A DNA stretch of 64,000 nt, taken from the IMG/VR virus record IMGVR_UViG_3300042465_005589, positions 186,001-250,000 of that record. One strand, 5' to 3'. A program made the position numbers and the translations under genes. Shown in pieces: positions 743-48,415 of this stretch (positions are counted from its first letter, which is position 1; each line of letters begins with the position of its first letter). The notes beneath the pieces are model-generated. The model was not told the origin of the DNA. It ran no database searches and saw only the letters and a list, made by a program, of their open reading frames with translations.

Positions 743-1397
743 AAAATGTGGTAAAGAAAAAAATGTTTGTGAATTTTATTCTGACAAAACAACCAAAGAC
801 GGTAAAAGAGGTTCTTGCAAACTATGTATGTCTTTATACGACAAAAATTGGAAAATAAATAACCCAAATAAGGTATTAGAATTGTCTCGTAAATATAACT
901 CTGAAAATAAAGAATTAGTAAATATAAAAACGAGAAAATGGCGAGAAAAAAATAAAACTTCAGAAATTATTAGAAATCGTGAGTGGAAAAAACTTAATAA
1001 TGAAAAAATAAAAGAATCAACAAAAAAATGGAGAGAAAAAAATAAAGAAAATATAAAAGAATATAAAAAAAATTATGAAAAATTAAAAATAAAAACAGAT
1101 ATATTATACAAATTAAAAAAAACATTACGAAATACAATATTACGATACCTTAAAAATAAAAGATTTACAACTACCGAAATTATTGGTTGTGATTATGATT
1201 CATTCAAGATTTATTTTGAATCATTATTTACCGAAGGTATGTGTTGGGACAAATTAGGTTCTGAAATCCATATTGACCACATTATTCCATTATCATCAGC
1301 AAAAACAGAAGATGAGTTATATAAATTAAATCATTATACTAATCTTCAACCATTATGGGCGAAAGATAATTTAATAAAAGGTAGTAAATTATTGTAA
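723..1397 (+). CDS. HNH homing endonuclease
   Basis: N-terminal CxxC...CxxC, Lys-rich KWRE repeats, C-terminal HIDHIIPL...NHYTNLQPLWAKDN HNH motif. Confidence 0.85.
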   Translation: MERKICKKCGKEKNVCEFYSDKTTKDGKRGSCKLCMSLYDKNWKINNPNKVLELSRKYNSENKELVNIKTRKWREKNKTSEIIRNREWKKLNNEKIKESTKKWREKNKENIKEYKKNYEKLKIKTDILYKLKKTLRNTILRYLKNKRFTTTEIIGCDYDSFKIYFESLFTEGMCWDKLGSEIHIDHIIPLSSAKTEDELYKLNHYTNLQPLWAKDNLIKGSKLL

Positions 1398-1808
1398 AAT
1401 TCTTTTAATTAAACGACATAGTTGGTCATTTTTGTCCTCAAATGGTAGGTTGTTAATATTGAAGTATGAGCACATAGAATGTTCATCACCATCGATAGCA
1501 TTTTCCAAGTCAGGGTTGATTCTCTCATCCGTCTCCATCATAAACACATACATCAATCCTTTAATCTCAGAACCATCACGATTATATCTTTTAACAAATC
1601 CAACTAAATTTAATTTATTATCTAACGTATAATTTGTTTCTTCTTTGAACTCTCTTTGGACCCCATCCATTGGATGTTCATCGTTTTCCAAATGACCACA
1701 AGGTATACTCCATTGTCCGGGCAAAGTACCTGTAGCATTTCTTTTACAAAGTAATACTTCATCACCACATTTAACAATTACACCGGAATATCGTTTAACT
1801 TCTTTCAT
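1389..1808 (-). CDS. Nudix hydrolase
   Basis: Nudix box G-x5-E-x7-RE-xx-EE (GHLENDEHPMDGVQREFKEET), preceded by LPGQWSIP. Confidence 0.9.
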   Translation of the reverse strand: MKEVKRYSGVIVKCGDEVLLCKRNATGTLPGQWSIPCGHLENDEHPMDGVQREFKEETNYTLDNKLNLVGFVKRYNRDGSEIKGLMYVFMMETDERINPDLENAIDGDEHSMCSYFNINNLPFEDKNDQLCRLIKRILQ

Positions 1809-1837
1809 TTTATATTTTTTTGTGTATTTATAAGTAT

Positions 1838-2185
1838 ATGGAACTAACTATAAACAAAAATAAATTCAAAGTCAAAACTGTTATATCTCCCAAAGACACT
1901 AGTCGTGGTATGATGAATAAAAGATTTGACGATACTTTTAATGGTATGTTATTTATTATGTCAGATGGTCATCACTGTTTTTGGATGAAGAATTGTATAA
2001 TTTCATTGGATATCATTATGATTGAAGACGATATTATAACAAAAATTCACCACAACTGTCCTCCTTGTAAAACCAAAGATTGTAGAAACTATTGTGGTGA
2101 AGGTGATATGATACTTGAACTTCAAGGTGGTACCTGTAAAAAATTAGGGATTAAGTCCGGAGACAAAATCATTCATTACGATTGA
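1838..2185 (+). CDS. DUF192 family protein
   Basis: RGMM...GMLF...FWMKNCIISLDIIMI...ILELQGG..KLGIKSGD; start moved to ATG 1838 (MELTINK), just after TATTTATA 1825-1832. Confidence 0.85.
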   Translation: MELTINKNKFKVKTVISPKDTSRGMMNKRFDDTFNGMLFIMSDGHHCFWMKNCIISLDIIMIEDDIITKIHHNCPPCKTKDCRNYCGEGDMILELQGGTCKKLGIKSGDKIIHYD

Positions 2186-3582
2186 TTTATCTTTTCCTGT
2201 AACAATTTCACAAACTCATTCTGAATCATTTTTGTAAACTTAATATAAGGAGCATCTTCCGATTCTCTATTATACCCACCACTTCCTTTTGGTGGACGAG
2301 TACTTCTACCCATAAAGTTTAATCCTGAGATATTTGTAATACATTTGTGTCCACCACTATTTGCTTGAATGAAATCCCAAGCGTTTACCTTAATATCATC
2401 TAACATTTGTCTATGTTCTTCTGGCAATTCAGAAAATGGTTTTTCCATCATCTCACCAATATGTGTTAGTTTTTCTCTACCATTATCCATAGTTTTGAAA
2501 TCTTTACCATATAACGCAACAAAGTCTTTAAATGTAAATCCTGTTGATTCAGGGTTAAAATCTTTTGAAGATTCCGATATCCACTTAATTGTTGAAAGGG
2601 ATATTTCTCTTTGTTTTAATTGGTCTTCCCATTTTGATAATACTTCTTGAGCAATCTCACCTAAGTTAACACCTTTCAATTGACGTTCACCTTTAAATGG
2701 GTTACAAGACGCTTGAACTAAACCTAAAGGCCAAGCAATTACAATAAAATCAGCGTCAGGATTGTTTTTAAATGGTGTATATCTATCGTATGAACCGGGT
2801 TTAAACATTGAACCACCTCCGTATTGAACAATAACATTACCTAATACCTTAACATTAGGATTTGTTTGCATTGATTTAACGTAATCTTCTTTATTTTTTT
2901 CAAGCTCTTCCGGTTTAGCATATCCCTTTTCAACCATTATTCGTTTAATAGTTTGAAGGATATTTAATAATGATGGCGTACATTCCATAACCAACGTTTC
3001 TAAGAACCCTGGCTTATTTTTAAATGCTAATAATAGTTTGTTTGCAACTAACCCCATTAACATTTTATTTTTCTCTAACGATTTGTCCTTATCCAATTTA
3101 AATAAATAAGAAATTACTTGGTCTACTGAAATTTCATTAACCGCATAATTTGCAGAATCCACTGTTGAAATAAGTAATATATCTGAAGACGGGAATAATT
3201 CTTTTGGAGAAACTACTTGAGATATTGTTTCAACATTTGAACGAGAACTTCTAAATGATGTGGATTTAGTTTCTTCAGCTCCCGCTTGTCTATCGTGGTG
3301 GTCCGTATGAATCACAAACATTGGTTTTCCGTGAGCAAAATCTACCAATACTGGCATAACATCACCGGTTGCGTCATTCTTCTTTACAGCAAACTCTTTA
3401 TCGCCATATTGAATAATATGAGCATCCACCACTTTAATACCGTTGTTCTCAAGATATTGTTTCATAGCAATTGCCGTCGTTACCCCATCCAAATCTTGAT
3501 GAAAATATATTTCAGCTTTGGGGTATCGTTTAGCAAGAGCATTAATATCTCTTAAACCACTTTCTTTTATAAGTTTTTTCAT
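2176..3582 (-). CDS. DHH/DHHA1-family phosphoesterase with putative head-targeting leader
   Basis: HQDLDG, VDFAH, TDHHD and C-terminal SGGH motifs; N-terminus MKKLIKES. Confidence 0.8.
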   Translation of the reverse strand: MKKLIKESGLRDINALAKRYPKAEIYFHQDLDGVTTAIAMKQYLENNGIKVVDAHIIQYGDKEFAVKKNDATGDVMPVLVDFAHGKPMFVIHTDHHDRQAGAEETKSTSFRSSRSNVETISQVVSPKELFPSSDILLISTVDSANYAVNEISVDQVISYLFKLDKDKSLEKNKMLMGLVANKLLLAFKNKPGFLETLVMECTPSLLNILQTIKRIMVEKGYAKPEELEKNKEDYVKSMQTNPNVKVLGNVIVQYGGGSMFKPGSYDRYTPFKNNPDADFIVIAWPLGLVQASCNPFKGERQLKGVNLGEIAQEVLSKWEDQLKQREISLSTIKWISESSKDFNPESTGFTFKDFVALYGKDFKTMDNGREKLTHIGEMMEKPFSELPEEHRQMLDDIKVNAWDFIQANSGGHKCITNISGLNFMGRSTRPPKGSGGYNRESEDAPYIKFTKMIQNEFVKLLQEKINQS

Positions 3583-3583
3583 A

Positions 3584-3937
3584 TTACATTGAAGGTAAAA
3601 TAGTTATTGCTATAACATCTCCACCTTTAAGACCTTTACCTAAATTACAACTTCTATTTGTTGCGATAATCTCATCAACACTCGAAACACCAGGATATTT
3701 TGATGCAATATCACTTAACGTATCACCTGATTTAACTTTATATAGTTTAACATTGTAACCATAAGTTGCTTGAAGTCGTTTTGGGTCACCAAAACAATAT
3801 TTACCCCCCATTTCAGGTTTAATTTTCCCCATTTGAACATCAACACCTTTTTGTTGATTCATTTGTTCATTAACTAATCCGTATTTTGAAAGGATATCGC
3901 CTTTTTCTTCTTCTGAAATTATAAATCTTTTTGCCAT
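3584..3937 (-). CDS. LysM-domain protein with putative head-targeting leader
   Basis: YKVKSGDTLSDIASKY...EIIATN...LKGGDVIAI; N-terminus KRFIISEEEK..DIL..YGLVNEQ; late motif at 3953-3960. Confidence 0.85.
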   Translation of the reverse strand: MAKRFIISEEEKGDILSKYGLVNEQMNQQKGVDVQMGKIKPEMGGKYCFGDPKRLQATYGYNVKLYKVKSGDTLSDIASKYPGVSSVDEIIATNRSCNLGKGLKGGDVIAITILPSM

Positions 3938-3968
3938 AATAAATCTTTTAGTTATAAATATACCGAAA

Positions 3969-3993
3969 ATAAAAAAGAGGTTATAACACCTCT
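3969..3993 (-). terminator. Intrinsic terminator overlapping the methyltransferase stop codon
   Basis: aagaggt / acctctt stem (3975-3993) with a U tract on the minus strand. Confidence 0.6.
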
Positions 3994-4844
3994 TCTTTTA
4001 ATTCTAATTTTGTTTGTTTATGTTCATCAATTAACGATTGGACTCTTTTTCTCGCAATCTCTGTATAGTCCGGAGATAACTCAATCCCAATCCATCGTCT
4101 ATCCAATAACTCAGCAGCAAATGCCGATGTTCCACTTCCCATAAAAGGGTCAAGAACTATATCATTTTTATATGATAATATCTTAATTGCTTTTGATGGA
4201 ATATCCATTGAGAATGTTGCTTTAGTTAACGACCTAGTATCTGCAAAATATTCCCATCTACCAAAAACCAAGTTCATAAACTCTTTCTTATCTTCGTCCT
4301 GATAAACCATTTTATTTTTAGTTTTACCATCTTCTGTAGTTACTTCAGTTGGTGTACCTAACCACTGAGACTCCCCTTTGGTTAATTTCTTATTAGTTTT
4401 CTTGTAAGCTAGAATAATACATTCCTTAGGATTATAGATGTAAGGACAACTTGCGCTCATCCAAGAACCCCAAGCTGTTTGTCTAACTCTATGTGGGCTA
4501 TCTTCTGTAAGGTCAACCATTCCATAAAATTTAAACCCAACCTCTTTCATTTTCATCCAAAACTCTGCGTTGAATAATATTCTACCACCTCTTTCCTGTA
4601 CGTTAATTTCTATAGGAACGTTGATTGCTATCCGACCATCATCTTTTAATACTCTATAAGATTCTGTTAACCACTGCGTTGTAAAATCCCAATATTCATC
4701 CATAGGAATACTATCATTATAAACATCATATTTGATGTTAACTCCGTAGGGTGGTGATGTCACCAATAAATCAATTGAACCTTCCGGGAAAGTTTTCATT
4801 ACCTCAATACAATCTCCATTAATTATCTTTCCTGTTTCTATCAT
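3981..4844 (-). CDS. DNA methyltransferase, N4-cytosine/N6-adenine beta class
   Basis: Catalytic TSPPY near the N-terminus; SAM-binding VLDPFMGSGT near the C-terminus. Confidence 0.92.
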   Translation of the reverse strand: MIETGKIINGDCIEVMKTFPEGSIDLLVTSPPYGVNIKYDVYNDSIPMDEYWDFTTQWLTESYRVLKDDGRIAINVPIEINVQERGGRILFNAEFWMKMKEVGFKFYGMVDLTEDSPHRVRQTAWGSWMSASCPYIYNPKECIILAYKKTNKKLTKGESQWLGTPTEVTTEDGKTKNKMVYQDEDKKEFMNLVFGRWEYFADTRSLTKATFSMDIPSKAIKILSYKNDIVLDPFMGSGTSAFAAELLDRRWIGIELSPDYTEIARKRVQSLIDEHKQTKLELKEEVL

Positions 4845-13849: not shown

Positions 13850-14698
13850 TTATTTTCTATAATTCATAATTAGTAATTCTTCCCCCATGTTCTGAACTTT
13901 ACCTTTCTTAGCCGCAGCAGCTTTAGCAAATTCTTTCTTCTCCCAAACATATTGAAGAGGAGGGAACCAAGTATGTAATTGTGGGAAATCATAATACGAT
14001 AATGAGAACTTCCCCTGAATACCTTTTAGACAATCAGCTAATCTCTCGTGGTCTTTACTATCAAAGTCGTGGTTGTTATAATAGTTCTCTGTCTTCCAAT
14101 ATGGGGGGTCAGCGTAAACATAAGTAGATGGTCCATCATACTTTTGAATAACATCTTGAAAGTCTAAATTTTCAACTTTAGTAATCTTTAAGAAATGTTC
14201 CACCCAATCCGGTTTAGATAACTTATCTCTGAAGGTAAGATACTTTGATTTATATTTCCCTTTCAAGTCTATAAATGAACTTGTTTCCGGTTTAGACCCT
14301 GAGAATACCTGAGCTAGTACATAAGCGTATTTAGCTGCAACCTGATAATCGTAAGCCTCTACCCTGAAATCTGTTTTAAATATTTCAGCTTGGAAGCTGA
14401 TAAATTGTTCTTTATAGATGTCCGGTGTTGGGAACTCATCTCTTTGTTGACACGGAATTGAGTTAACAACCTCTAACAATCTCTCAGGATTCTGAAGACA
14501 TTGAAATAAATTATAATTAAGTGGATTGAAGTCGTTATATACAACTTCTTTTAAGTTTGGGTATTTGGTTAGGTCCATATTAAAGAACACCCAAAACATA
14601 CCTGAAAATGGTTCCACGTATGTTTCAATGTCTTGAGGTATGAATGGAACAATCCACTTACCTATTTTTGATTTTCCCCCGATGTATGATAATGCCAT
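13850..14698 (-). CDS. dam: DNA adenine methyltransferase (D12/Dam class)
   Basis: SYIGGKSK, YVEPFSG, YNDFN, YADPPY. Confidence 0.92.
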   Translation of the reverse strand: MALSYIGGKSKIGKWIVPFIPQDIETYVEPFSGMFWVFFNMDLTKYPNLKEVVYNDFNPLNYNLFQCLQNPERLLEVVNSIPCQQRDEFPTPDIYKEQFISFQAEIFKTDFRVEAYDYQVAAKYAYVLAQVFSGSKPETSSFIDLKGKYKSKYLTFRDKLSKPDWVEHFLKITKVENLDFQDVIQKYDGPSTYVYADPPYWKTENYYNNHDFDSKDHERLADCLKGIQGKFSLSYYDFPQLHTWFPPLQYVWEKKEFAKAAAAKKGKVQNMGEELLIMNYRK

Positions 14699-24991: not shown

Positions 24992-27358
24992 TTATTGGGA
25001 AACATAACTAATATTTTCTTCTTTTCTAATTCTCACTACATTATCCGCCCAATTTGTTACTAATGGGTTGTGGGTAATAACGAATATCTTCTCAAAGTAT
25101 TCTTTAATTTTAGAGAAAAACTCCGATACCATCTCCAAGTTGTCATTGGATATTTTTCCGAAGACCTCATCGAATACAACCACATTCGCTCTTGGCAATG
25201 AACATATCTTACTTAACACGGCTCTCAATGCTAGTGAAGCGATACTTCGTTCATATCCGGACCCGGATGCCATCGGTTTCTCAACCTGAGTGTTGTTATC
25301 AATCATAAGGAAGTCAACTTCATTCTTATCATTAATCTTAACTTCTAATCTAAAGTGGCAACTATCCTCTAACAATCTTTGAAGTTCACTATTAATAAGT
25401 GGCATCATCGTTTTCATAATAAGTTTGGTCACACCGTTCTTACCAAAGATTTCCAAATAGATTTTATAGATTCTTTCTCTCTCAGCTTCCTCAGCAATTT
25501 TTCTAATTGTTTCCAAGTTAGAAGTTATCTTGGTGGTTAAATTAGTCATTGTAAACTTATTATTTGAGATACTAGTTTCAATAGTTTTCTTCTCACCCTC
25601 AAGTTCATCAATTCTAATTCCCGCTTTAATCAACAATCCATCTGTCTTATTGTTTTCAATAATTTTGTCCTGAACTTCAGAGTATCTTTCCAATTTGGTT
25701 TTCAACGCATCAATCATCAATTGAAATCGTTCAACACTTAATTCATATTTCTCTTTGATAAGTTTGTTTTTCTCATACTCATCAAATTCCTTTTTAAGAT
25801 TAACAAAACCTTCTTCTCTGCCGGTTAACTCACGCATTAACCCCAATAATTCCTCTTTGTGCGTGATAAGTCCGGCAAGTTCTCCAATTTTAGCGTTAGT
25901 AATTGCAGCATTCATCAGTTCAATACCACAGTGCTCACATTTGATTCCACCATCAACCGAACTCTTCAGTTCTTCAATACTTTTAATCTTCGCATTGTTC
26001 TCCGCTTGTTTGGTAATCAAATCTTTAATCTCTTGTTTTACCTCATCGTGTTTATCCTCGTGGTAAAATTCAGATGGTTCAACAACCTTAACACCATCTC
26101 TATCTGAAATAGCTTTAGCTTTCTGTAAGTCCAACCCATTAATTTCCTCTTGGACTTTGTCCGGTGATACTAGTGTTAAATCTCTATCAATATTATGTTT
26201 GGAGTTTAATAACCCATCACGATATTCCTGACCCTTAAGGATTCTTGTTTTAGCATCTTCCAACTGAATATCTAATGTAAGATTAGTTTCTGTTAGGGTA
26301 TCAATTGTTTCTTGACTAGTTTGATTATCCGTTTTAAGTTCTTCAGAGTTATAGATGTTTGACAACATTCCTTTGGAGAAGTCACTATAAATTTCTTTGG
26401 CAGCTTCTTCCTTACGTTTAAGGAAATCCAACCCCATAAATCTTGAAAGAACTTGACCCCTCGCCGTAGGTTTGGCATCAATTAGTTCTTCCAAGTTGGT
26501 GGCAGTTGTTAGGATGGTCATTAAGAAGTCCTCTTTGGTCCCGATAGACGTTTTGATAAACGCCTCGGTCTCTCTTCGTTGTTCTCCGGTGAAGTTTTGT
26601 AAACTACCATCAGACAATCTTTTATAGAAGTCCAACTCGGTCTTAACCGTCCATTCGCCTTTTTTTGATAACTTTCTTTCAATATTTCTCAATATGATAT
26701 ACTCCTCACCATCAATTGTAATCTCACCTTTCACGGCAACTTTGTTTCTCTCTGTAAACCTGTTGAATATCTCCTCCGCTTTTGATGTCTTGGTTGTTTC
26801 ATTAAAGAATAAGAACATAAGTAAATCTACAGTAAGAACTGTCTTACCCCCAAAGTTAGGCGGGTTTGACTCCACAACCGTAATCCCATCACACTTCTCA
26901 AAATCTATCTTCTGATTCTCACCATACGATAGGAAGTTTGAGAACTCGATGTTCTTAATGTACCATCTCTTAAACGGAGTGGCATCGGTTTGGTCCTGTA
27001 ACAATTTGTTATCCACAATACTATTAAGTTGGTAGATATCATCGTAGTGTTCCATATTCCCTTTTGACTCCAAGAATGAACGAACTAACTCTAATTGATA
27101 GTTCTCATCCAAAATGTTAAATGATATGTCTACGGTATGTGTGGTGTCGTCAGCAACCTTTGTCTTCGTGATTACGTTGACGTTGGTTGTGTTATACTTC
27201 TTTTGAAAGTAATGACGAACACTCTTTATTTTTTCTTGTGTAAAATTCTCAGCATAATCCTCCCATACAACCTGTAGGTAAGGATTATCCAAGTTTACAA
27301 TATCTAAATCTTCCATTATTGTGTAATTAAATTGTGGTGGGGGATTAAATAAATCCAT
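24992..27358 (-). CDS. sbcC: SbcC/Rad50/gp46-like recombination ATPase with about 130-aa N-terminal extension
   Basis: IEFSNFLSYG, NFGGKT P-loop, coiled coils around zinc hook CEHC, ASGSGYE signature, VVFDEVFG Walker B, ITH. Confidence 0.93.
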   Translation of the reverse strand: MDLFNPPPQFNYTIMEDLDIVNLDNPYLQVVWEDYAENFTQEKIKSVRHYFQKKYNTTNVNVITKTKVADDTTHTVDISFNILDENYQLELVRSFLESKGNMEHYDDIYQLNSIVDNKLLQDQTDATPFKRWYIKNIEFSNFLSYGENQKIDFEKCDGITVVESNPPNFGGKTVLTVDLLMFLFFNETTKTSKAEEIFNRFTERNKVAVKGEITIDGEEYIILRNIERKLSKKGEWTVKTELDFYKRLSDGSLQNFTGEQRRETEAFIKTSIGTKEDFLMTILTTATNLEELIDAKPTARGQVLSRFMGLDFLKRKEEAAKEIYSDFSKGMLSNIYNSEELKTDNQTSQETIDTLTETNLTLDIQLEDAKTRILKGQEYRDGLLNSKHNIDRDLTLVSPDKVQEEINGLDLQKAKAISDRDGVKVVEPSEFYHEDKHDEVKQEIKDLITKQAENNAKIKSIEELKSSVDGGIKCEHCGIELMNAAITNAKIGELAGLITHKEELLGLMRELTGREEGFVNLKKEFDEYEKNKLIKEKYELSVERFQLMIDALKTKLERYSEVQDKIIENNKTDGLLIKAGIRIDELEGEKKTIETSISNNKFTMTNLTTKITSNLETIRKIAEEAERERIYKIYLEIFGKNGVTKLIMKTMMPLINSELQRLLEDSCHFRLEVKINDKNEVDFLMIDNNTQVEKPMASGSGYERSIASLALRAVLSKICSLPRANVVVFDEVFGKISNDNLEMVSEFFSKIKEYFEKIFVITHNPLVTNWADNVVRIRKEENISYVSQ

Positions 27359-32238: not shown

Positions 32239-33138
32239 TTATTTCATTGTATAAAAGTAATCACTGATATCACCCCTTAAATCGGCAACATCGGCATCAC
32301 CCGTTAATTTTATTATTTTAACCTTACCATATAATCTCCCACCATTTAAGTTGTGGAATAGTTTTACACCATCGTTCCAAGCATCACTATCCAAACAAAT
32401 AATTATATTCCCATTTGCTTTCTCGTATAATGTATTAAGTAATAACTCTGACATATGTTTTCCCAACATAGAAATACTATTAGGTAGGAAGATTGCATCA
32501 AACGCTCCCTCACAAAGATGAATGTCCTCATTCCAATTGATTGTACTTTCAAAGAATATTATTTCATCCTTTGAAGCTTCGGGGTTTTTATATTTGGCAC
32601 GACTATTTGGGTCCCAACTTCGGGCTATGAAATAATTTAATTTATTTTTACTATCGTAAGATGGGATTATTATCCTTCCCGAAAACGCTCCTTTATCACA
32701 GAACCCAATACCATATTTTTCAATAATATTATCAGTAATCCCACGTTGAGTTAAATAATTATAAGCTTGACGACGAACAGGGTAAACTAAACTGCTGTCC
32801 TTGAATAGGGTAAACCCATCTGGCAGTTTTAATATATCTTTTCGTTTCTCTTTTGGTTTATGTTGTTCAGGTTGAAGTAGGTTATATATTTTTTTCTGTT
32901 TCTTATTACCAAAATTATCTATAAGTTTTCCCAAAGGTCCTTTGGTGTTATTCTCATCACCACAACTCCAACACTTGTAAACGTGTTCAAAGTAGTTTAC
33001 CTCAAGGTTTCCTTTGTGTTGTTCTTCATCGCATATTGGACAATCAAAAGATATTTGACCTTTTGATTCATAGTGAAGTTTTTCATCTCCCAATATATCG
33101 TGTAGTATTTCTAGTAAAATTTCGGCATCATCTGACAT
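32239..33138 (-). CDS. dnaG: DNA primase (zinc finger plus Toprim)
   Basis: CPIC...CWSC, RIIIP, KYKNP, LCEGAFDA, CLDSDA; start moved to 33138 (MSDDAE), directly after the -7 element. Confidence 0.9.
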   Translation of the reverse strand: MSDDAEILLEILHDILGDEKLHYESKGQISFDCPICDEEQHKGNLEVNYFEHVYKCWSCGDENNTKGPLGKLIDNFGNKKQKKIYNLLQPEQHKPKEKRKDILKLPDGFTLFKDSSLVYPVRRQAYNYLTQRGITDNIIEKYGIGFCDKGAFSGRIIIPSYDSKNKLNYFIARSWDPNSRAKYKNPEASKDEIIFFESTINWNEDIHLCEGAFDAIFLPNSISMLGKHMSELLLNTLYEKANGNIIICLDSDAWNDGVKLFHNLNGGRLYGKVKIIKLTGDADVADLRGDISDYFYTMK

Positions 33139-33142
33139 ATAG

Positions 33143-33173
33143 CAAAGATAAGAAAAAATAATATAACAGTCAA
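33143..33173 (-). promoter_or_regulatory. Bacteroidetes-type promoter heading the replication operon
   Basis: caaagata 33143-33150, caa 33171-33173; implies an almost leaderless mRNA. Confidence 0.6.
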
Positions 33174-33199
33174 TCTTCACAAGTTTTTCATTCCTATTA

Positions 33200-33206
33200 T
33201 ATTTAT
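33200..33206 (+). promoter_or_regulatory. Late motif TATTTAT heading the rightward structural block
   Basis: The same motif precedes many structural genes. Confidence 0.6.
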
Positions 33207-33223
33207 TGAGATAACCTAGAGAA

Positions 33224-33439
33224 ATGAGCACACAAATAACTATAAGTAATATTACCGGAGTATCTCCTTTTAAAGTGTATCTATGTGATAACCCTATTAC
33301 TTTATCAATATATATAGACACAATTTCAACGTTTCCATATAATGTGGTTATACCTCCTATTTGGAGTACGTTGACATCATTTAATATAAAAGTTATAGAT
33401 AATAATAATTGTGAATCAATTTTAAATTTAACATTATAA
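33224..33439 (+). CDS. Small beta-rich structural protein (paralogue of 36568-36873)
   Basis: ITISNITG.SPF.VYLCD...IKVIDNNNCE. Confidence 0.75.
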   Translation: MSTQITISNITGVSPFKVYLCDNPITLSIYIDTISTFPYNVVIPPIWSTLTSFNIKVIDNNNCESILNLTL

Positions 33440-47815: not shown

Positions 47816-48415
47816 ATGAAAAAAACACTTAAAGAAAGTCCTAAAGTATTAGGACTTGATGTTTCAACTAAAACTATTGGTTGGGCATTATTTGATATAC
47901 AAAGTAGAGAATTACTCGAATTAACACATATATCTCCCGTACCAAAACCAAAAGAAGAAAACAAAATAAAAGAGTTACTTCTAAAAGGAGAAATTTTCAG
48001 AAGTAAACTTTTAGAATACAAAGATATGGGTATCACTAAAGTAATTATCGAGGAACCTTTATTAAACTCAAACAATGTTTATACAGTTCAAACGTTATTA
48101 AGATTCAACACTTTAATTACAAAAGAAATATATGACGTTTTAGGTGTAGTACCTGATTTCATATCAACATACAATTCTCGTAAGTTCGCCTTTCCGGAAT
48201 TAACTCAATTAAATGATAAAGGTAAATACGTACTATTTGGAGGTCTTCCTAAAGACATTGATAAGAAAATGATTATATGGGACCTAATTGCAAAAAGAGA
48301 ACCTCAAATCACTTGGTTATACACAAGAAACAATACCCTTAAAAAAGAAAACTTTGACCAAACAGATGCTTATTGTTGTGTTATAGGTCATATGAAACAA
48401 GAAAAAATATGGTAA
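47816..48415 (+). CDS. ruvC: RuvC-like Holliday junction resolvase
   Basis: VLGLDVSTKTIGWA, VIIEEP, DQTDA. Confidence 0.85.
   Translation: MKKTLKESPKVLGLDVSTKTIGWALFDIQSRELLELTHISPVPKPKEENKIKELLLKGEIFRSKLLEYKDMGITKVIIEEPLLNSNNVYTVQTLLRFNTLITKEIYDVLGVVPDFISTYNSRKFAFPELTQLNDKGKYVLFGGLPKDIDKKMIIWDLIAKREPQITWLYTRNNTLKKENFDQTDAYCCVIGHMKQEKIW

Follow-up and report, generated by a model that had tools for sequence, protein, structure and literature searches.

A phage-only DHH/DHHA1 enzyme beside a variable cassette slot in lake-water jumbo phages, with a possible role in virion-delivered counter-defence

Introduction

DHH enzymes of jumbo phages have been predicted to counter the signals of SMODS/CBASS (cyclic oligonucleotide-based anti-phage signalling systems) and of type III CRISPR systems (Iyer et al. 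2021, PMC7824862), and a DHH-DHHA1 nuclease of Sulfolobus, associated with the membrane, degrades the signal molecule cA4 (PMC7824862). Neither this class of enzyme nor the idea of anti-signalling is new, the latter being in print as a prediction (PMC7824862), and a search of the literature found no phage DHH enzyme assayed on messengers. The present work concerns P0001, a gene for a DHH/DHHA1 phosphodiesterase located at 2176..3582 on the minus strand of the window, that is, the 64,000 nucleotides spanning bases 186001-250000 of a 318,164-bp IMG/VR virus record (IMGVR_UViG_3300042465_005589); window coordinates are used unless marked G000:C1. P0001 shares with the enzymes of Iyer et al. (2021) the superfamily, the proposed role and the jumbo-phage setting. 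Published examples such as the DHH enzymes of AR9 (NrnB) and PhiEaH1 are recognisable by sequence, and they match P0001 only at the level of the fold (TM 0.3-0.35), as does the annotated enzyme of PaBG. The virion delivery proposed below, the operon and the domain fusions lie outside the earlier proposal.

Two other described systems are close to this locus. In T4, capsid-targeting sequences of 10-20 amino acids are found at the N-terminus of proteins destined for the head, and gp21-type proteases cut after Glu (PMC5694885). The late-made internal proteins and Alt of T4 carry such a sequence, are cleaved by gp21 and enter the host with the DNA. As in the T4 internal protein/Alt system, the genome studied here combines a gp21-type protease, a major capsid protein and a portal with some 20 unrelated proteins bearing Glu-ending leaders; a late-type motif precedes the leader genes, and a genomic slot keeps the leader while changing the body. 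Unlike in T4, the leader has a sequence unrelated to T4's, the DHH N-terminus fits it over its first 8 residues only, and cleavage and packaging are predicted. For the polyvalent proteins of phages and conjugative elements (Iyer et al. 2017), a polypeptide that joins an enzyme with a wall-lytic domain is a published signature of injection together with DNA (PMC5512222); the term 'DHH' does not occur in the main text of that paper. Relatives of P0001 similarly join the DHH module to M23, GH19-like, TseH-like, SET, GNAT and SAM-lyase-like domains in one polypeptide. Unlike polyvalent proteins, P0001 itself is a single module, its LysM partner being encoded by a separate, translationally adjacent gene, and two or more disparate enzymatic domains per polypeptide occur only in the relatives P0122, P0123, P0177, L075 and L085.

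Phage proteins that remove immune signals are also known from other folds. P0001, with its DHH/DHHA1 fold, is unlike Acb1 (2H), Apyc1 (MBL, metallo-beta-lactamase) and AcrIII-1 (DUF1874); it could act similarly without being a member of any of these families. In Bacteroides, type III-B CRISPR signals through SAM-AMP. Two activities that degrade this molecule are known, those of SAM-AMP lyases and of NrN-family phosphodiesterases, and one SAM-AMP lyase encoded by a phage is regarded as a candidate anti-CRISPR (PMC12255297). What is new here is the size and divergence of a phage-only DHH clade, its conserved late-type operon beside a cassette slot, the effector-type fusions of its members and the connection with a leader that recurs in a phage encoding a prohead protease of the T4 type.

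Results

Motifs and predicted fold of P0001

Under translation table 11, P0001 is an open reading frame (ORF) of 468 amino acids which comprises a DHH domain (residues ~21-145), a helical insert (~146-243), a DHHA1 domain (~244-420, including a second helical insert at 340-400), a loop (421-444) and a C-terminal helix (445-467). A preliminary description of this DNA, made from the sequence alone, had reported complete DHH-family motifs (DxDG, DHH and GGH), and these proved to be conserved well beyond the window. In an alignment of 38 full-length relatives (27-91% identity), motif I (H28-x-D30-x-D32-G33), D81 of motif II, D94-H95-H96 of motif III, D142 of motif IV and the DHHA1 motif G410-G411-H412 are all invariant, and the longer stretch S409-G410-G411-H412 is invariant or nearly so.

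Standard family scans left the protein open. Its Pfam DHH score of 23.8 bits lies under the cut-off of 28.1, the Pfam scan did not match the DHHA1 domain, and the NCBIfam scan returned only faint RecJ matches (14 bits against a cut-off of 397). A PHROGs search with P0001 gave no match, PDB chain searches with the single sequence and with a family profile gave no significant match, and a PADLOC run gave no defence-system match.

The AlphaFold2 (AF2) model of P0001 (pLDDT, the predicted local distance difference test, 89.8; pTM, the predicted template-modelling score, 0.90) contains two alpha/beta domains joined by a linker, as in solved members of the DHH superfamily, and its structure matches with Foldseek and VIA are exclusively DHH-family structures. 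The closest solved folds are the small-substrate enzymes PggH, a pAp phosphatase, NrnA and TM1595; NrN structures in complex with SAM-AMP also occur among the matches, and the DHHA1 fold aligns with those of PggH, NrnA and RecJ. About 170 residues, mostly helical, lie beyond the core (the two inserts and the C-terminal helix). P0001 is only 10-16% identical to NrnA, PggH, TM1595, Rv2837c/CnpB, DhhP and the CRISPR-associated NrN. Set against NrnA, GdpP and RecJ, the references named in the preliminary description, the model is closest to the NrnA/PggH type. The N-terminal transmembrane helices, PAS domain and degenerate GGDEF domain of GdpP have no counterpart in P0001, whose DHH domain begins at residue 21, and P0001 neither matches the RecJ-specific model nor carries the extra OB-fold/C-terminal domains that form the single-stranded DNA hole.

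The earlier assignment to the DHH/DHHA1 phosphoesterases is thereby borne out by the two-domain fold and the invariance of all catalytic residues. Motifs and modelled fold, on which membership rests, confirm P0001 as a DHH/DHHA1 two-domain enzyme with an intact predicted active site, and in the model its core is nearest the stand-alone, small-substrate DHH type.

A large phage-only clade with effector-type fusions

Because the family scans left P0001 open, an exhaustive search of representatives was run, which found relatives in 376 clusters at 50% identity; a word search had found more than 4,000 clusters at 90% identity. In IMG/VR, a gene for a relative is present at no fewer than 577 loci. 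The ESM Atlas neighbours of P0001 are 100% viral, and the structures nearest to it in BFVD and ESM Atlas belong to viral proteins that are uncharacterised. A tblastn search of deposited phages with P0001 found a homologue in only four uncultured genomes of 635-735 kb, and no match came from cultured or deposited phages when 8 kb was compared with them by megablast. The clade diverges from cellular NrnA far more than AR9-type phage enzymes do. As judged from these searches, the P0001 clade is large, very divergent and phage-only; it differs from stand-alone DHH/DHHA1 enzymes in this restriction to phages, in its late-type operon with wall-binding cassettes and in the effector-type fusions of its members.

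Two of the closest representatives of the 50% clusters, both 66% identical to P0001, carry peptidoglycan-directed domains: P0122 joins the DHH module to Peptidase_M23, and P0123 joins it to PG_binding_1 and a GH19-like domain. Both are real fusions, since a Lys stands at the position of the P0001 stop codon, and read-through as the source of the M23 fusion was ruled out for the same reason; P0122 moreover lies in the same synteny as P0001. In L075 the DHH frame continues into a SET domain with no stop in the IMG/VR DNA, and DHH+SET fusions form an all-viral ESM Atlas cluster of 67 members. In L085 and L087 the frame continues uninterrupted into a TseH-like hydrolase (26 bits against a cut-off of 27). 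P0177 and P0200 combine the DHH module with a DUF3293/SAM-lyase-like domain, a call made by Pfam alone, since PDB sequence searches with the two proteins gave no match. GNAT and DUF5661 are further partners among the relatives, and single fusions to FtsH-like and sigma-70 sequences may be artefacts of gene calling. Counting neighbours as well as fusions, peptidoglycan-directed modules accompany the DHH enzyme in at least six independent arrangements; the gene upstream of DHH codes for a LysM protein here, for PG_binding_1 in L011 and L023, and for a leader-bearing T4-type lysozyme in the marine L099.

The LysM-DHH operon and its promoter-like element

Read along the coding strand, the end of a DNA methyltransferase gene is followed by a hairpin with T-run (3998-3971), the sequence TATATTTATA (3962-3953), a 15-nt spacer, the ATG of the LysM gene (3937), its stop (3584) and, after one base, the ATG of the DHH gene (3582). 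The upstream cistron (3584..3937, minus) encodes a LysM protein of 117 amino acids whose N-terminus (MAKRFIISEEEK...) is leader-like and whose C-terminal part is a peptidoglycan-binding LysM domain (Pfam, 30 bits). The 11-bp hairpin and T-run (3971..3998, minus), located by a terminator scan at the methyltransferase gene end, resemble an intrinsic terminator and set the LysM-DHH operon apart from the genes upstream. Between this hairpin and the LysM gene, TATATTTATA (3953..3962, minus) constitutes a promoter-like element, hereafter motif A, 15 nt 5' of the LysM ATG.

Over the genome, the 8-mer TATTTATA is the most enriched upstream word, found before 54 ORFs where 4.6 were expected, and its position peaks 20-25 nt before start codons. 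Motif A lies 20-48 nt upstream not only of the genes for the scaffold-like protein, the S77 protease, the portal and the tail tube but also of most of the large ORFs that are putatively structural, whereas the primase, SbcC-like, methyltransferase and Nudix genes have no motif A at this distance. The PHROG annotation of ten large motif-A genes gave a DNA polymerase as its sole match, with the motif at an atypical 68 nt. The order of methyltransferase stop, hairpin with T-run, GATATTTATA-like motif and ATG is kept in all 64 of 64 distinct related loci, in which the hairpin stems vary in sequence yet stay complementary; by this constancy, the DHH gene would always be expressed from the motif-A element. 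Given a promoter element common to head and tail genes, the DHH enzyme is probably made late.

The Nudix hydrolase that the preliminary description had placed two genes away is real (1389..1808, minus; Pfam NUDIX, 63.5 bits), with a DUF192 gene lying between (1820..2185, plus; Pfam DUF192, 76.7 bits). A different promoter motif (motif B, of the TAnnTTTG type, 54 nt upstream) and a separate transcription unit rule out the Nudix enzyme as a functional partner of DHH.

A variable slot beside the DHH gene

A comparison of 80 IMG/VR loci (72-100% identity) showed a constant gene order: p456, p255, p116, methyltransferase, slot, DHH, DUF192 (on the opposite strand) and Nudix. The hypervariable slot between methyltransferase and DHH measures from 240 to 2,350 nt (L009-L088) and corresponds to 3583-3980 in the window. 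Its conserved left border is the N6/N4 DNA methyltransferase gene (3981..4844, minus; Pfam N6_N4_Mtase, 120.9 bits) and its conserved right border the DUF192 gene, which is convergent with DHH and syntenic with it in 65 of the 80 loci, as well as in two other contigs. At their 3' ends the DHH and DUF192 genes overlap by 10 nt (2176-2185), and this pairing is kept in freshwater and marine relatives.

Nearly all ORFs of the slot start alike (MAKRFIISEEEK, MKKTIKESELKE, MKILVTESQYF or MTKIIRLTESDL), and the N-terminal 25 amino acids of the first slot ORF are kept while the body is exchanged. Bodies include LysM (in the window), PG_binding_1 (L011 and L023), a 370-amino acid family (38 distinct slot variants), DUF5856 and others. 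In most relatives a leader-bearing family of 300-400 amino acids (L035:4857-5996 and 37 related slot ORFs, alignment A3), which does not occur in the present genome, lies directly 5' of DHH. Its invariant residues include W62, N64, D68, G71, D74-P75-T76, G91 and P114 (L035 numbering), and AF2 predicts the 370-380-amino acid slot family to be all-helical, at low confidence (pLDDT 64). On the marine TARA scaffold, L099:2426-2986 encodes a T4-type lysozyme (PF00959) with the canonical leader MQIIVTESQL, 15 nt upstream of the DHH homologue P0139. By analogy, the cassette slot resembles the T4 internal-protein loci, and the parallel appears close.

A recurrent N-terminal leader and the prohead protease

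At 36-48 kb lies the head module of the genome. Its gene for a gp21-type prohead protease (Peptidase_S77, 84 bits) adjoins those for the portal, a scaffold-like protein and a major capsid protein of the T4 type. About 20 otherwise unrelated ORFs of this genome (79-386 amino acids) begin with MK[LIV]IITE followed by x-Q/K-Y/L. Outside the window, starts of such ORFs were found on the minus strand of G000:C1 at 116306, 116542, 115141, 140621, 141457, 139038, 146640, 147340, 148075, 151996, 152373, 161223, 161831, 162139, 180645, 287240 and 287542. All nine six-frame matches to the strict leader pattern fall at ORF starts (9/9), and a leader hidden Markov model (HMM) cleanly splits leader ORFs from internal control windows. 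The proteins have no similarity past residue 20. The leader codons show synonymous variation and conservation does not extend to the upstream DNA, so the signal lies in the peptide. The MKxIITE leader is a possible capsid-targeting or processing signal, a candidate proposed from sequence; a literature search on leader peptides found no report of it.

The preliminary description had seen a putative head leader on the DHH protein, a claim which stands in part. Codons 1-7 (3562..3582, minus) read MKKLIKE, then SG, and are leader-like, with a hydrophobic-x-Glu end that is a putative prohead-protease site. Against the genome's leader the P0001 N-terminus scores 14.2 bits on an 8-residue position weight matrix (rank 18 of 421 ORFs, first eight positions only), and residues 1-7 are disordered in the AF2 model (pLDDT <50). 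The resemblance is weak and limited to seven residues, and membership of the canonical MKxIITE class was dropped as a claim since the 22-residue HMM missed the protein. Family members carry 0-30 extra N-terminal residues, and these extensions close with [LIVF]-x-E ahead of the conserved SG. The relative in L031 begins MKQIITESG, and the marine P0139 begins MKNIVITEKQ, closer to the leader than P0001.

Three further observations concern N-termini and leaders. Of the six occurrences of [LIVMF]-x-E-S-G-[LIV] in the proteome, two are N-terminal: those in the major capsid protein (MGALLESGL; G000:C1:39256-41112, minus) and in DHH (MKKLIKESGL; window 3555-3582). The leader-bearing L003:2965-4038 ends with a PG_binding_1 domain. 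Additional recurrent leader classes are ..KLTESDL..IV.RV..EQ and ..ISEEEK..I...Y.L..EQ.

Discussion

A possible virion-delivered phosphodiesterase

We tentatively propose, with somewhat less than even confidence, that P0001 is a late-made, virion-packed and injected counter-defence phosphodiesterase acting on small nucleotides. The enzyme would be a predicted metal-dependent DHH/DHHA1 phosphodiesterase of the stand-alone NrnA/PggH type, and the LysM-DHH operon would be transcribed late from the AT-rich element common to head and tail genes. The protein would then be packed into the virion, perhaps targeted by its short N-terminal leader, which the gp21-type protease would remove by cleavage behind Glu7. 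Together with the DNA and beside peptidoglycan-directed partners, the protein would reach the next host. Once injected, it could hydrolyse small phosphodiester nucleotides ahead of any phage gene expression; candidate substrates are messengers of immunity or stress, for example c-di-AMP, the di- and trinucleotides of CBASS, cyclic oligoadenylates or SAM-AMP, or the linear products of such messengers. Late timing, packaging, leader cleavage and substrate are all inferred.

For virion delivery, independent circumstantial support is provided by the promoter motif, the gp21-type protease, the leader-like N-terminus and the peptidoglycan modules fused to or encoded beside the enzyme. As for an immune messenger as the substrate, there are hints from analogy: the NrnA/PggH/NrN-type fold matches, the SAM-lyase-like fusions and the published precedent of a DHH-DHHA1 nuclease acting on cA4. 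Acb1, Apyc1, AcrIII-1 and SAM-AMP lyase need to be expressed first, which leaves an interval for the host to raise its alarm. A pre-packed phosphodiesterase delivered together with the DNA would, if the proposal is true, close this interval, and it would be the first DHH-family counter-defence enzyme as well as the first injected one. Whatever its substrate, the present data define a large, unannotated phage-only DHH/DHHA1 clade overlooked by standard family scans and an arrangement of promoter, operon and cassette that is conserved in abundant jumbo phages of lake water, and the leader on about 20 proteins could offer a sequence handle for predicting virion-delivered proteins of uncultured phages.

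Several observations weigh against virion delivery or against a role in counter-defence. At the N-terminus, the DHH protein, whose seven-residue leader is short, escapes the 22-residue leader HMM; several family members begin at MSG without a leader, in one case confirmed in DNA with no possible upstream start; and N-termini of the MKK type occur frequently in AT-rich genomes; in the window, for example, a probable RuvC-like enzyme starts with MKKTLKES. We infer that motif A is a late promoter from four annotated structural genes (scaffold-like, protease, portal and tube), because most motif-A genes are without annotation. The sequencing runs containing this sequence are DNA only, RNA runs not having been found among them, and the DHH gene is 145 kb away from the head module. 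P0001 is also the best-conserved gene of its neighbourhood (median identity of 79%, against 65-72% for the others), and such high conservation, with universal presence in the lineage, is unusual for accessory counter-defence genes. The neighbours, including Nudix, DNA methyltransferase and HNH genes and a CTP synthase in a relative, belong to nucleotide and DNA metabolism, which also fits salvage. Lastly, likeness of modelled folds cannot tell messenger hydrolysis from nanoRNase or pAp phosphatase activity.

Alternative explanations

In a rather unlikely but credible alternative, P0001 would be an unpackaged cytoplasmic salvage enzyme, an NrnA-like nanoRNase or pAp phosphatase functionally similar to T4 exonuclease A. 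It would complete the degradation of host RNA and DNA fragments to mononucleotides, which phage DNA synthesis would use. Its top structural matches (PggH, a pAp phosphatase, NrnA and TM1595) and its nucleotide-metabolism neighbours agree with this; strong conservation and universal presence suit a housekeeping function, and AR9 NrnB, a jumbo-phage DHH enzyme, is annotated as an oligoribonuclease. However, the operon and promoter motif are those of leader-bearing wall-binding cassettes and structural genes and not of replication genes, a salvage enzyme would have no reason to be fused repeatedly to peptidoglycan hydrolases or to SET and SAM-lyase-like domains, and the clade is far more distant from cellular NrnA than the AR9-type enzymes are.

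A role as a RecJ-like 5'-3' single-stranded DNA exonuclease in phage recombination, repair or DNA-end processing is quite improbable. RecJ is among the proteins with which the DHHA1 fold aligns and accounts for the faint NCBIfam matches; the model has its closest solved folds among small-substrate enzymes. An envelope-directed phosphodiesterase, which at entry or lysis would act alongside the LysM, PG_binding or lysin partners on phosphodiester-linked wall, capsule or lipid-linked polymers instead of nucleotides, is very improbable indeed, for although peptidoglycan-binding or -cleaving modules persist across at least six architectures, the nucleotide-binding GGH motif of DHHA1 is invariant, the P0001 sequence contains no signal peptide or membrane segment, the SET, GNAT and SAM-lyase-like partners act on cytoplasmic targets, and we know of no DHH-family enzyme that acts on such polymers.

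The proposal of an injected counter-defence phosphodiesterase can be extended to a wider model, which we consider speculative and, as a whole, unlikely. In this model the LysM-DHH operon would be the conserved anchor of a T4 internal-protein-like system in lake and marine Bacteroidota jumbo phages. At least 20 unrelated proteins with MKxIITE-type leaders would be made late, loaded into the head by means of the leader, trimmed by the gp21-type protease and injected. The cassettes (LysM, PG_binding_1, lysozyme and the 370-amino acid helical proteins) would vary beside a constant DHH enzyme, which would destroy immune nucleotides on arrival, the candidates being cyclic oligoadenylates, c-di-AMP, the signals of CBASS and the SAM-AMP of CorA-type type III CRISPR.

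The phage, its host and other features of the window

The virus record is rated complete by CheckV and has a G+C content of 31%. Its coding density under table 11, computed on the whole genome, is 92.6%, which rules out an alternative genetic code. Genes for the large terminase, tail sheath and tail tube were identified in the genome, and metagenomes of lake water from 24 studies contain the sequence. A second enriched upstream word, TATCTTTG, precedes 22 ORFs where 2.4 were expected, for example those starting at 1808 (Nudix) and 47816, and marks a gene set distinct from that of TATTTATA; the two words point to two temporal gene classes. TAnnTTTG is the -7 element of Bacteroidota promoters. 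Because TATCTTTG fits this element, the host is probably a member of the Bacteroidota.

The left two thirds of the window form a DNA-metabolism region which includes an HNH/endonuclease VII-like gene (723-1397, plus), a second DNA methyltransferase (13850-14698, minus), an SbcC-like ATPase (24992-27358, minus) and a DNA primase (32239-33321, minus). Scans of the window for tRNA genes and Rfam families gave no match. The right third (36905-63992) contains very large unannotated ORFs, several with the TATTTATA motif upstream. At 47816-48415 (plus), the 199-amino acid ORF starting with MKKTLKES has TAnnTTTG upstream and a LGLDVSTKTIGWALFD stretch similar to motif I of RuvC-type nucleases.

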